Part shown: piece after piece, positions 3,491 through 20,100 of the stretch
Layout of the letters: each line of letters opens with the position of its first letter
Position numbering within the stretch: position 1 is the first letter of the stretch
Assembly: GCF_006345805.1 (NCBI RefSeq)
Contig: NW_021836717.1
Location: forward strand, 1 to 22,798
Reading direction: 5' to 3'
Source of the DNA: Octopus sinensis
Taxonomy: Eukaryota
Length of the DNA stretch: 22,798 bases
Made by a program: the position numbers and the translations under genes
The notes under the pieces: generated by a model
What the model was told of the DNA's origin: nothing
Databases searched by the model: none
The model's input: only the letters and a program-made list of their open reading frames with translations

Positions 3491-3698
3491 TACAAGATGT
3501 TCCTGGCTTCACGGTATCTCGAAAGGTTTGTTTGGAAGCCCAACCTTCCGAGTTTTCTTACAAGGTTTTGAAAGTCTGAACGACCGCTGGAATAAGCGTG
3601 TGAATCTGAGAGGGGAATATGTTGAATGAATTCCTAATTCACTGACCCTCCTGTATTTTCTTGTACCCAAGCCAGGAACTTTTCAGTAACTCTTTGTA
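3491..3698 (+). mobile_element. Mariner-derived MITE or deletion derivative
   Basis: Termini ta-caagatgttcctggctt and ccaagccaggaacttttcagtaactctttg-ta share the inverted core gttcctggctt; TA at both ends. Internal frame reads FLQGFESLNDRWNKRVNLRGEYVE*, matching the mariner C-terminal consensus (GI..L..RW.KCV...G.YVE*). Confidence 0.85.
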
Positions 3699-3701
3699 TA
3701 T

Positions 3702-3770
<69 letters not shown>

Positions 3771-3775
<5 letters not shown>

Positions 3776-4030
3776 CTTCGAAACACGCTGGAGTTGAACT
3801 AGGGACAGCTGATGAAGGGGATTTTTCCTTGTGTAGTTGTCTTGTACTCTGTTTTTCGTTTTAAAAAAATGGTCTGTTCCATGCTGTTTTTACGTTTTCG
3901 TTTCTCGTTGAGTTCTACGTCTATTTGTGGTGTCCTGTACACACGTATATATATTTATATATGCATGTATATATACATGTAGATGTAGGTACGTACATAT
4001 ATGTTTGTATGTATGCATATATTTATTTAT
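3771..4030 (+). repeat. Dispersed repeat, homolog of 47-300, flanked by (TA)n on both sides
   Basis: Similarity as described for 47-300; (TA)n at 3700-3772 and about 4040-4126. Confidence 0.6.
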
Positions 4031-4048
4031 TACACTATTATATATATA

Positions 4049-4108
<60 letters not shown>

Positions 4109-8604: not shown

Positions 8605-8822
8605 TTACTCTGTTTTACTCTTTTACTTGTTTCAGTCATTTGACTGCGGTCATGATGGAGCACCGCCTTTAGTCGACCAAATCGACCCCAGGACTTATTC
8701 TTTGTAAGCCCAGTACTTATTCTATCGGTGTCTTTTGCCGAACCGCTAAGACCCGGTACGCGCGTAAACCCCCACCATCGGTTGTCAAGCATGCTGGGGG
8801 ACAAACACAGACACACAAACAT

Positions 8823-8872
<50 letters not shown>

Positions 8873-9035
8873 GACGGGCTTCTTTCACTTTCCTTCTACC
8901 AAATCCACTCACAAGGCTTTGGTCGGCCCGAGGCTATAGTAGAAGACACTTGCCCAACATGCCACGCAGTGGGACTGAACCCGGAACCATGTGGTTGGTA
9001 AGCAAGCTACTTACCACACAGCTACTCCTGCGCCT
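8605..9035 (-). mobile_element. Near full-length tRNA-derived CORE-type SINE with internal (TA)n/(TG)n and (AGTAAA)-like tail
   Basis: Minus strand: ggcgcaggagtagctgtgtggtaag (A-box), ggttccgggttcagtccc (B-box), gtggcatgttgggcaagtgtctt (CORE-like), internal microsatellite, tail gactgaaacaagtaaaagagtaaaacagagtaa. Resembles the octopus OR-type SINEs. Confidence 0.9.
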
Positions 9036-9104
9036 ATGTGCATAATTTTTCTATATATAATTTAGTCAGATAAAAAAGGTCATGTCCAGTATATTTGAAC
9101 AACT

Positions 9105-9247: not shown

Positions 9248-9347
9248 TATCTGAGAGTTACGAGATTGTAAAGCTGACGAGAATAAGTCAGTTGTGTTTG
9301 ATGGGATTGAATGGCAGTGATATATAACTAGTCAGTGACATATAACT

Positions 9348-9579
9348 AAGGCGGCGAGCTGGCAGAAACGTTAGCACGCCGGGCGAAATGCGTAGCCGTA
9401 TTTCGTCTGTTGTTACGTTCCGAGTTCAAATTCCGCCGAGGTCGACTTTGCCTTTCATCCTTCCGGGGTCGATAAATTAAGTACCAGTTGCGTACTGGGG
9501 TCGATGTAATCGACTTAATCCCTTTGTCTGTCCTTGTTTGTCCCCTCTGTGTTTAGCCCCTTGTGGGTAGTTAAGAAAT
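9348..9579 (+). mobile_element. Full-length tRNA-derived SINE (second family)
   Basis: aaggcggcgagctggcagaaacgttagc (A-box-like), gagttcaaattc (B-box GTTCRANNC), 3' end gtttagccccttgtgggtagttaagaaat; same family as 19544-19944. Possible short TSD aacta. Confidence 0.9.
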
Positions 9580-13190: not shown

Positions 13191-13267
13191 TTACTATTCG
13201 ATTATTCACTGAGGGCAAAATATACGTAATCAGCGCTCAGCAATTTAAAAGCAAAATAGTTTCAGTT

Positions 13268-13371
13268 CTCTGCCATATGCCCGGGCATATGGCGTAGTGG
13301 TTAAGAGCACGGGCTACTAACCCCCAAGATTCCGAGTTATATTCCAAGCAGTGACCTGAATAATAATAATA

Positions 13372-13406
<35 letters not shown>

Positions 13407-13421
13407 AATAATAATAATATT

Positions 13422-13456
<35 letters not shown>

Positions 13457-13618
13457 CAACATCGAAAATACCTTAGGAATGAGAACCCAGGTTCGATATT
13501 TCCCCCAAGACACTTGAAGAAGGCTGGAGGGTATACCTGCCGAAACGTTGTTTTAACAACAAACAAGATGACAAATATCCGTTCAATGTAAATAATGTAA
13601 ATAATGTAAATAATGTAT
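13268..13618 (+). mobile_element. Complete tRNA-Ser(GCU)-like SINE carrying a hammerhead motif, with 15-bp TSD
   Basis: TSD aaaatagtttcagtt at 13253-13267 and 13619-13633. Head gggcatatggcgtagtggttaagagc...gggctactaaccc resembles the tRNA-Ser-GCT D and anticodon arms; degenerate B-box gagttatattcc; internal (AAT)/(GAT)n 13359-13460; HHR 13509-13554; tail (aatgtaaat)3-aatgta 13585-13617. Confidence 0.85.
13509..13554 (+). ncRNA. Minimal (dimer-type) hammerhead motif, decayed
   Basis: gacac TTGAAGA a ggc...gcc GAAA cg TT gtttt. Palindromic ACGT stem III; C3U and one stem I mismatch. Confidence 0.6.
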
Positions 13619-13659
13619 AAAATAGTTTCAGTTGCTTATTTTCCATTTCTACATTAAAA

Positions 13660-19169: not shown

Positions 19170-20100
19170 CATAGATATTGCAGACTATGTTTCCTCCATT
19201 CATTACGTTACCGGTGCGTTTTCGAGCAGCTCGCTTACGTTCATCATGAAAAAAAACGTGGAATTTTCAAAACCTTTATCTCATTCCTTTTCCTCTTTCC
19301 CCCTTTGGTGGCAATGACAAGCATTGCTTTTCCAACTCATTTCCTATATCTCTCATAACTTCAAAAAGAAATTCACCACAATCCTTAAACCGTGGTCTTG
19401 GTTTCTGCTGGGGACGCTTCCCACGAACGAAGCAAATGCATACATACTCAAAAATTAAAACAGTCACCAAGTTAAAATACAACCGACCAGATATCGTTGT
19501 ATGGGACCACAAAGATATGTTCTGTTGTAGAAATCAGCTGCCCTAAAGCGGCGAGCTGGCAGAAACGTTAGCACACCGGGCGAAATGCTTAGCGGTATTT
19601 CGTCTGCCGTTACGTTCTGAGGTCGACTTTGCCTTTCATCCTGTCGGGGTCGATAAATTAAGTACCAGTTGCATACTGGGGTCGATGTAATCGACTTAAT
19701 CCGTTTGTCTGTCCTTGTTTGTCCTCTCTGTGTTTAGCCCCTTATGGGTAGTAAAGAAATAGGTATTTCGTCTGCCGTTACGTTCGAGTTCAAATTTCGC
19801 CGAGGTCGACTTTGCCTTCCATCCTGTCGGGGTCGTTAAATTAAGTACCAGTTGCATACTGGGGTCGATGTAATCGACTTAATCCGTTTGTCTATCCTTG
19901 TTTGTCCCCTCTATGTTTAGCCCCTTGTGGGCAATAATGGAATAAGAAATCAGCTGCCTTCTGGACATCAATTTGGTTAGAAAAATACAAGGGAAAGAGG
20001 GCATCTATGGACCATTGATAAGGCTTTGCAAATCCAACAACAAAATACACTTTCAACTTCATACCCATTATTACTGGAAGAAAAAGATACATACGAACCC
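19170..20100 (+). pseudogene. 3' relic of an RLE-type (R4/Dong-like) non-LTR retrotransposon, split by the SINE dimer
   Basis: CRLC zinc-knuckle start at 19179; NRPDIVVWDHK at 19481-19513; after removing the insertion and one TSD copy the frame reads VVEISCLLDINLVRKIQGKEGIYGPLIRLC; FIPIITG at 20058-20078. Order fits the CCHC plus PD-(D/E)xK RLE C-terminus. Confidence 0.75.
19544..19944 (+). mobile_element. Head-to-tail dimer of the 9348-9579 SINE family with one shared 14-bp TSD
   Basis: TSD agaaatcagctgcc at 19529-19542 and 19945-19958. Unit 1 (19544-19761) lacks the B-box segment; unit 2 (from 19762) lacks the A-box. Confidence 0.9.

Follow-up and report, generated by a model that had tools for sequence, protein, structure and literature searches.

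Elements that resemble short interspersed nuclear elements (SINEs) and combine an RNA polymerase III (Pol III) promoter with a hammerhead ribozyme are already known, as in Sm-alpha; so are minimal hammerheads in Penelope-like elements (PLEs), and non-autonomous elements that depend on PLEs, such as retrozymes and MRC1. Here we describe an insertion at positions 13253-13633 of a 22,798-nt stretch of genomic DNA from Octopus sinensis (NCBI RefSeq assembly GCF_006345805.1, contig NW_021836717.1, positions 1 to 22,798 of the forward strand; the whole stretch is called the window hereafter). Judging from its sequence and from those of its relatives, we consider it probable that this insertion is a dead copy, and an old one, of a composite non-autonomous retrotransposon that is abundant, carries a tRNA-type head and a PLE-type tail and is mobilised by PLE machinery.

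Published hallmarks of PLE insertions are a high degree of 5' truncation, an accompanying copy that is inverted and truncated at its 5' end, and a 'tail' of 30-40 bp that is often found on one end only (PMC8557442). A purified PLE from Anolis cleaves and extends both target strands; PLEs have two internal reverse transcriptase (RT) start sites, the tail being the sequence between them, and the PLE hammerhead cuts upstream of the RT start, at a distance of roughly 85-92 nt (PMC11167929).

Layout of the window copy

The window copy is a single insertion in which perfect 15-bp target-site duplications (TSDs) bracket 351 bp (13268-13618). Its parts are as follows, RT start and cleavage sites being predicted.

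13253-13267, plus strand: left TSD, AAAATAGTTTCAGTT, identical at 15/15 positions to 13619-13633
13268-13282, minus strand: inverted head stub of 15 nt, CTCTGCCATATGCCC as read directly, between the left TSD and the head
13283-13360, plus strand: Pol III-type head, 94.9% identity to the head consensus
13290-13300, plus strand: A box TGGCGTAGTGG, an exact fit to TRGCNNAGTGG
13335-13345, plus strand: decayed B box AGTTATATTCC (family consensus AGTTCGATTCC)
13359-13456, plus strand: (AAT)n/(GAT)n/(AAC)n microsatellite spacer, internal, at a constant place in full-length copies
13457-13618, plus strand: PLE-type 3' module made of leader, hammerhead, AC-rich hairpin and (AATGTAAAT)n, 91.9% identity to consensus positions 1-159
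13509-13554, plus strand: minimal type-I hammerhead, inactivated, gacac-TTGAAGA-a-ggctgg..cctgcc-GAAA-cg-TT-gtttt
13509-13513 / 13550-13554, plus strand: stem I of the hammerhead motif
13514-13520, plus strand: core TTGAAGA of the hammerhead motif (C3U), with an extra A at 13521
13522-13527 / 13536-13541, plus strand: stem II of the hammerhead motif, with a U.U mismatch
13542-13545, plus strand: GAAA of the hammerhead motif
13545-13548, plus strand: ACGU palindrome of the hammerhead motif
After T13549, plus strand: predicted cleavage site of the hammerhead motif
13585-13617, plus strand: (AATGTAAAT)n tail repeat, zone of the proximal RT start and 3' end (Tandem Repeats Finder, 3.7 copies, 100%)
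13619-13633, plus strand: right TSD, AAAATAGTTTCAGTT, the same 15-mer as 13253-13267

Tandem Repeats Finder reports the spacer as a period-3 array at 13359-13453 with 31.7 copies. The initial annotation of the window had described one unit bounded by a perfect 15-bp TSD and composed of head, (AAT)n, ribozyme motif and 9-mer tail, and each of these lies where it had been placed. It overlooked the 15-nt inverted stub at 13268-13282, which is the reverse complement of the head's first bases (GCCATATGCCC / GGGCATATGGC). This stub is the smallest version of the head-to-head inverted arm that is found in most other copies. The window copy is thus a monomer that has this 15-nt stub and TSDs of 15 bp, and its 3' module stops at the proximal of two end points seen in the family, without the 33-nt extension found beyond it in other copies.

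A large family of composite units

We searched the 2.72-Gb assembly (13,516 contigs) for the element, a first search giving 5,165 first-look candidates. Copies were counted using 41-mers from successive parts of the unit, with up to 3 mismatches allowed and reversed 41-mers as controls:

Head 41-mer: 6,764 genome copies, reversed control 0
Hammerhead-core 41-mer, consensus CTGAAGAAGGCTGGAGGGTATATCAGCCGAAACGTTGTGTT: 10,758 genome copies, reversed control 0
41-mer just downstream of the ribozyme: 16,328 genome copies, reversed control 0
41-mer of the extension-bearing end: 10,658 genome copies, reversed control 0

The rise in copy number from 5' to 3' is what variable 5' truncation predicts. The family is a short, dispersed, non-coding retroposon flanked by TSDs and present in more than 10,000 copies. 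Its consensus unit consists of a head of about 78 nt, a variable (AAT)n spacer and a 3' module of about 185 nt, the latter comprising a hammerhead without helix III, an AC-rich hairpin, (AAUGUAAAU)n and, at its terminus, an extension of 33 nt. The spacer occupies the same location in all full-length copies and varies in length and composition. Among 51 copies not chosen on the core, the median divergence from the consensus is 4.3% (range 0.7-10%); the family copies are young.

To look at what lies upstream of the ribozyme irrespective of the head, we used 30 loci picked only for an exact ribozyme core. [quoted passage not shown] Head and hammerhead are collinear in every copy examined, including both arms of the dimers described below, and the copies differ only in their 5' truncation. 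With one TSD around the window unit, this collinearity upholds the earlier view of the locus as a single composite SINE, and the constant order of head, spacer and module rules out, for the family, that the two parts are independent adjacent insertions in other copies.

Integration scars resemble those of PLEs

The head and tail consensus was mapped onto each of 60 loci. The element forms a head-to-head inverted dimer, tail(-) head(-) / head(+) tail(+), in 34 of the 60, where each arm holds the element's 3' end and both arms are 5'-truncated at variable points where they meet. Past the point at which the window copy ends, copies may carry the optional 33-nt extension ACATAATTCCTCATCTCTTAAATATAGAACTGT. 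This extension is found on exactly one arm in 32 of the 34 dimers, on neither in 2 and on both in 0. Independent arms would predict one-arm dimers in half of the cases and both-arm dimers in a quarter, so the one-arm pattern is far from chance. Monomers are split, 12 with and 13 without the extension. Arms that lack it end at consensus positions 132-171, mostly 142-160, inside the 9-mer repeat. Exact repeats of at least 9 bp flank the element at 19/60 loci, compared to 2/60 for a shifted control; they are 9-15 bp long.

The two arms of a dimer can be told apart by the subfamily marker N7 (CUGAAGA versus CUGAUGA). They differ at this marker in 6 of 23 dimers (L039, L049, L057, L010, L013 and L003), whereas random pairing of arms predicts about 10 of 23. 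Dimer arms are hence often, not always, copied from different RNAs: because the arms of the six discordant dimers carry different N7 states, two RNA templates were involved in each of them. Snap-back copying or duplication after insertion, which we considered for these same dimers, is excluded by arms that come from different N7 subfamilies. The extension arm is the more 5'-truncated arm in 21 dimers versus 10 (among 32 dimers, L002-L059; p=0.07, confounded by the choice of loci), which might reflect the order of events between the two strands.

In the SINE, 93 nt separate the predicted hammerhead cut site (91/92) from the distal end downstream of it. Read from the copies themselves, the insertion scars match the published hallmarks of PLEs and not those of long interspersed nuclear elements (LINEs). 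PLE-type integration is indicated by the TSDs of 9-15 bp, the variable 5' truncation, the inverted dimers, the extension on one arm only and the arms of mixed subfamily.

We propose the following course of events. Pol III would transcribe from the head through the element, as suggested by the A and B boxes and by a consensus free of T4 runs. The RT/GIY-YIG protein of a PLE would recognise the 3' module, cut both target strands 9-15 bp apart and prime cDNA synthesis on SINE RNA from both nicks. At one nick, synthesis would begin at the distal start, position 185, and yield the 33-nt extension; at the other it would begin at the proximal start within the 9-mer repeat. The two cDNAs would extend toward each other, halt at variable points and be joined head-to-head. 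Where only one side was productive a monomer would result, as is presumably the case for the window copy, with its 15-nt inverted stub kept. For the steps from the cut in both target strands to head-to-head joining, the evidence is the scars in the genome. The hammerhead, if it cleaves (after GUU, consensus 91/92), would separate the promoter head from the tail in which reverse transcription starts, and its targets would be transcripts that are paired or result from read-through, with dimerisation or a protein as help.

A Pol III head of tRNA type

In the consensus head, the A box TGGCGTAGTGG at positions 8-18 fits TRGCNNAGTGG exactly and the B box AGTTCGATTCC at 52-62 matches 10/11 positions of GGTTCGANNCC. 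The consensus unit begins 7 nt upstream of the A box, as a tRNA does. Because the A box is perfect, the B box fits at 10/11 and the unit starts 7 nt before the A box, there is good evidence that the head is a tRNA-derived Pol III promoter. The consensus contains no T4 run, and Pol III would therefore read through into the flank; a PLE RT, which begins at an internal site of its template, could cope with this (PMC11167929).

The initial annotation had gone further in calling the head tRNA-Ser(GCU)-like. tRNA-Ser belongs to class II, in which a long variable arm separates the anticodon arm from the T arm. The head has its B box at position 52, the spacing of a class I tRNA, with about 5 nt left for the variable region, and its T stem is not complementary. 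ARAGORN finds no tRNA in the window or in the head consensus, even with lowered thresholds. The Ser(GCU) label is thus unsupported, since boxes at 8 and 52 leave no room for a long variable arm and no tRNA model of ARAGORN or Rfam matches.

Two further observations concern the head and its boxes. Full-length heads (L013, L032, L033, L038 and L041) are usually preceded by (AT)ATGCCC-AC/GT-GGGCAT(AT), a short palindrome, even in apparent monomers; this palindromic junction points to one of two causes, a snap-back that regularly takes place at the end of the cDNA or transcription of a few additional bases. Another motif like a B box, GGTTCGAAATT, lies at consensus module positions 33-43 in a small hairpin upstream of the ribozyme, where the window copy (13490-13500) reads GGTTCGATATT. 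It may be a leftover of another tRNA-like piece, or due to chance.

The family hammerhead and its decay in the window

Other copies of the family read GACAC-CTGAAGA-A-GGCTGG-AGGGTATA-TCAGCC-GAAA-CG-TT-GTGTT, and the consensus hammerhead is accordingly GACAC-CUGAAGA-A-GGCUGG..UCAGCC-GAAA-CG-UU-GUGUU, with a canonical core. This core has C3-U-G-A-N-G-A9, G12-A-A14, U16.1 and U17, and an additional A follows A9; GACAC/GUGUU forms stem I (5 bp) and GGCUGG/UCAGCC stem II (6 bp). From the window copy alone, CUGANGA and gacac/gtgtt had been forecast for the consensus as a refutable test, and the forecast was exactly right. Also confirmed is the replacement of stem III by a loop-less palindrome, as the consensus has no helix III and its A15.1-C-G-U16.1 reads ACGU. 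N7 (A or U, about 40%) is the only high-frequency variant within the ribozyme and the sole core position that is free to vary. The stems give no compensatory changes because the family, at a median divergence of 4.3%, is too young.

We assessed chance occurrence with a descriptor of the minimal hammerhead (CUGANGA, 0-1 extra nt, stem II of at least 4 bp, GAAA, 0-8 nt, UH, stem I of at least 4 bp). It matches the 185-nt consensus once, on the sense strand, and 1 in 200,000 shuffled versions of it. In the 60 SINE loci it gives 48 matches, compared to 0 in about 240 kb (both strands) of the window and 30 unrelated loci. These results show that the motif is well above chance. The fold of minimum free energy (MFE) of the consensus monomer consists of exactly stems I (5 bp) and II (6 bp) around an open core; a competing hairpin, GUUGU/ACAAC, is predicted to sequester the 3' strand of stem I.

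In the window copy this structure is broken. C3 is changed to U while G8 is unchanged, so that the conserved core is lost, and a G-to-U change in stem I, which also generates TTTT at 13551-13554, adds to it; both the C3U and the single stem I mismatch had been noted in the initial annotation and are real on reading the sequence. Together with the U.U mismatch in stem II, a B box mutated from CG to TA, a 3-nt deletion relative to the consensus and a divergence from it of about 8%, these changes mean that the window copy is old and dead several times over.

The TTTT at 13551-13554 (GTGTT to GTTTT) falls right at the predicted cleavage site and would be a Pol III terminator. The same GTTTT variant is present in L003 and L005, the two copies closest to the window copy, and may mark a small subfamily. 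Within the stem II loop of the window copy, 13530-13537 is a perfect palindrome, GGTATACC (consensus GGTATATC).

What the ribozyme might do

The initial annotation had proposed that two transcripts pair through ACGU, so that the RT-start tail is cut off only at high RNA concentration and copy number is limited. We regard such a concentration switch as unlikely. In its favor, the consensus lacks helix III, and a nested double hammerhead can be drawn without pseudoknots because A15.1-C-G-U16.1 is the palindrome ACGU; furthermore, the predicted cleavage would part the promoter head from the RT-start region. A requirement for dimers is in itself not new, since it is already in the literature: minimal PLE hammerheads without helix III cleave poorly, and in vitro only as dimers or multimers (PMC4209133). 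That low activity also tells against the switch, as does one PLE hammerhead that is protein-assisted, needing the PLE protein, yet not required for insertion in vitro (PMC11167929). Nor is the double hammerhead favored energetically, at -24.3 kcal/mol compared to -26.0 for two monomers and -31.4 for the non-hammerhead dimer MFE, with the limit that nearest-neighbour models leave out the tertiary core and these energies are therefore not decisive. The predicted dimer MFE pairs the two RNAs through the stem II loop region and not through the hammerhead stems.

The genomic 5' ends are a further source of information. They show no cluster of 5' truncation at cleavage position 92 among 24 truncated arms, a small sample; a post hoc cluster of starts at 54-60 (5/24) is not trustworthy. 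Over 35 secondary arms, truncation density per nt is about 0.11 (positions 1-56), 0.15 (57-97) and 0.16 (98-140), without enrichment at the cleavage site. The genome, in this small sample, shows no footprint of cleavage, and a family of more than 10,000 copies gives no sign of effective self-limitation, which likewise speaks against the switch. Most likely, the ribozyme was inherited as part of the PLE RNA module. Our best guess is that, if it acts at all, it would do so with protein help or on paired transcripts, and it is unlikely to be needed for insertion. The boldest form of the proposal, a first SINE family driven by PLE machinery in which the 185-nt tail is a natural minimal PLE RT template and the hammerhead a dose-dependent trans cutter that uncouples head from tail, is in our judgment unlikely.

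The search for a PLE partner

Candidate donors of the machinery are plentiful. The Pfam GIY-YIG domain (PF01541) gave 4,846 candidates in the genome, of which 149 were scored, with open frames of 780-883 amino acids (aa) among those scored. PLEs among the loci read have a C-terminal endonuclease (EN), in the order RT ... CX4CX2C ... GIY-YIG, and the one frame scanned with Pfam, that of L067 (596 aa scanned), contains RVT_1 and GIY-YIG. Intact PLE ORFs with RT and GIY-YIG thus appear, from these matches, to be abundant in the genome.

Among the loci read, L061-L090 include an abundant, apparently young family (for example L067, L068 and L077) with frames of up to 883 aa around GIY-YIG and a CX4CX2C linker before the domain. 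A subgroup (L072, L076, L080 and L085-L087) has 3' untranslated regions (UTRs) with repeated units containing GATTGGTCA(A/G)AA..TTGATGACGTC.

Several results weigh against a PLE-mobilised, tRNA-headed SINE. BLAST (word size 7) of the head and tail consensus against 30 GIY-YIG loci, covering 1.5 kb either side of the EN domain with ORF starts and pseudo-long terminal repeats (pLTRs) falling outside, gave no match to the tail. Within 1.47 kb downstream of the EN domain in these 30 PLE loci the descriptor finds no canonical minimal hammerhead. Head-to-tail tandems, the pLTR-like arrangement that is a hallmark of PLEs, are absent from the 60 SINE loci. ARAGORN recognises neither module, near-consensus copies included, and the Rfam tRNA model matches neither the window nor six consensus-like loci nor L033, a copy close to the consensus, whether at gathering score or at E<=10. 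The unfavorable energy of the double hammerhead given above belongs here too. Finally, the Rfam hammerhead models have no match on the window, on six consensus-like loci or on L033, at gathering score or at E<=10; this last null is expected and uninformative, because those models require helix III. No Rfam family at all reaches its gathering score in the window.

The 3' UTR of the main PLE family is unrelated to the SINE tail. An autonomous partner sharing the last 110 nt, which the initial annotation had suggested looking for, is not among the 30 PLE loci within 1.5 kb either side of the EN domain. The PLE hammerhead and RT start sit at the ORF start or pLTR. As for the idea of a chimeric SINE that captured a PLE terminus, a PLE origin of the 3' module fits the PLE scars; the capture itself would be conjectural, a PLE with the same tail being missing from the 30 loci.

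Other explanations

A LINE-dependent tRNA SINE of the stringent type, in which (AATGTAAAT)n would be a LINE-type tail repeat, the hammerhead a passenger and the dimers products of twin priming, seems to us quite improbable. Partners of the L2/CR1 type slip at the LINE tail, and short 3' tandem repeats are also found in stringent-type LINE/SINE pairs. The 3' ends of the octopus family, a short tandem repeat with a variable number of units, resemble such slippage, which is one more point against PLE mobilisation, and the 30 PLE loci, within 1.5 kb either side of the EN domain, yielded no partner. In L1, twin priming yields an internal segment in inverted orientation followed by a 3' segment in direct orientation, both from one RNA. 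Here, by contrast, both dimer arms carry the 3' end, and the arms come from different subfamilies in 6/23 dimers. The 33-nt extension on one arm (32/34) is a described PLE signature (PMC8557442, PMC11167929), and a canonical PLE-type minimal hammerhead lies at the expected distance from the RT start.

A retrozyme-like element, in which tandem hammerhead repeats would be cut at either end, closed into circles and propagated as circular RNA, is less probable still. Type-I hammerheads do occur in animal non-LTR (long terminal repeat) retrozymes, for which a dependence on PLEs is presumed (bioRxiv 10.64898/2026.07.22.740005; PMC7761336). Yet the 60 loci contain no head-to-tail tandem, one ribozyme per unit means that a monomer transcript cannot release a circle, and a Pol III head with dispersed, TSD-bounded copies is a set of SINE features.

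We give very little credence to the possibility that the window holds two separate neighbours, the first a tRNA SINE with (AAT)n at its end, the second a hammerhead fragment of PLE origin inserted into that tail. An (AAT)n tail would be a plausible landing site, since the PLE endonuclease prefers ATT- and AT-rich targets (PMC11167929). However, a single 15-bp TSD brackets the whole window unit, the order head, spacer, module is kept in all full-length copies, in both dimer arms and in the core-selected copies, and the head (6,764) is rarer, not commoner, than the ribozyme module (10,758). For the origin of the family as a whole, a hammerhead fragment landing in the (AAT)n tail of a tRNA SINE is plausible because of this same preference for ATT-rich targets (PMC11167929).

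DNA transposons of foldback type are expected to have symmetric ends and a fixed TSD length, and a foldback or MITE-type (miniature inverted-repeat transposable element) transposon with the arms as long inverted repeats can be all but dismissed here: many copies are indeed long palindromes flanked by direct repeats, but the TSDs range in length from 9 to 15 bp, the two ends are unlike because a single arm has the extension, the arms stop at differing points where they meet in the centre, monomers flanked by TSDs are common and the arms of one dimer can come from different subfamilies.

Surrounding repeats

The window has a GC content of 33.5% and is dense in di- and tetranucleotide microsatellites. 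Other interspersed repeats lie at 8605-9040, 9341-9579, 19544-19944 and 3695-4051 and are common to many of the fetched loci. Elsewhere in the genome, other tRNA-like SINE heads adjoin copies of the family, as in L040 (about 1640-1720, in the orientation of the element) and L049 (1225-1297); examples are GGCGCAATGGCCCAGTGGTTAGGGC... and an Rfam tRNA match of 26.1 bits, slightly below the gathering score.

Comparison with known systems

SINEs are held by textbooks to ride on LINEs. A tRNA-headed SINE with PLE scars and more than 10,000 copies would, if true, extend SINE parasitism to the third class of retrotransposons. Thousands of dispersed minimal hammerheads reported in animal genomes are unexplained, and the family described here would account for part of these 'orphan' motifs, if our reading is correct. 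Its copies form a large natural data set on PLE integration, with priming on both strands, two start sites, one per strand, and two template RNAs in some events; the scars agree with the single in vitro study of a PLE and would extend it in vivo. The 185-nt module is also a candidate minimal RNA substrate for the biochemistry of PLE RTs and for the purpose of PLE hammerheads. In the literature we found no description of a dispersed, tRNA-headed SINE with PLE scars and, in cephalopods, none of a SINE that bears a hammerhead or depends on PLEs, Repbase-type libraries being outside this search.

The schistosome elements Sm-alpha and Sj-alpha are alike in being short non-coding retroposons with a Pol III promoter and a type-I hammerhead on the sense strand, whose cleavage parts the promoter from the remaining RNA (PMC6765202, PMC8490949). 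Unlike the octopus SINE, which is dispersed and whose hammerhead lacks helix III, Sm-alpha is for the most part tandem, or satellite-like, and its hammerhead is canonical, having helix III as well as loop contacts. The octopus SINE differs from it also in showing PLE scars (inverted arms and a one-sided 33-nt tail) and in the phylum of its host, a mollusc.

Classical tRNA SINEs with LINE tails share with the octopus family the A and B boxes at tRNA positions, the succession of head, body and tail, the TSDs, the 5' truncation and the very high copy number. The tail and scars of the octopus SINE point instead to a PLE and not to a LINE, and it has no poly(A).

Among non-autonomous elements, animal non-LTR retrozymes also bear hammerheads and have been proposed to depend on PLEs (bioRxiv 10.64898/2026.07.22.740005). 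They are tandem repeats that give rise to circular RNAs and have no Pol III head, whereas the SINE occurs as dispersed monomers and inverted dimers. MRC1 of Chlamydomonas, one of the non-autonomous Chlamys PLEs, shares its 3' end with PLEs and is mobilised by them (PMC8557442), but it forms pLTRs and head-to-tail multimers and has neither a tRNA head nor a canonical hammerhead.

The closest likeness is to PLEs themselves. The minimal hammerheads of PLE pseudo-LTRs (Cervera & de la Pena 2014; Frangieh et al. 2024) have the same short stem I, longer stem II, missing helix III and dimer-permitting palindrome, and a cut site about 90 nt upstream of the RT start; these PLEs likewise leave a 5'-truncated copy in inverted orientation and, on one end, a tail of 30-40 bp, and have two RT start sites. 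The SINE differs in having one extra A between A9 and stem II and in lacking an RT/EN ORF, a pLTR and tandem structure; in the place of a PLE promoter, it carries a tRNA-type Pol III head.

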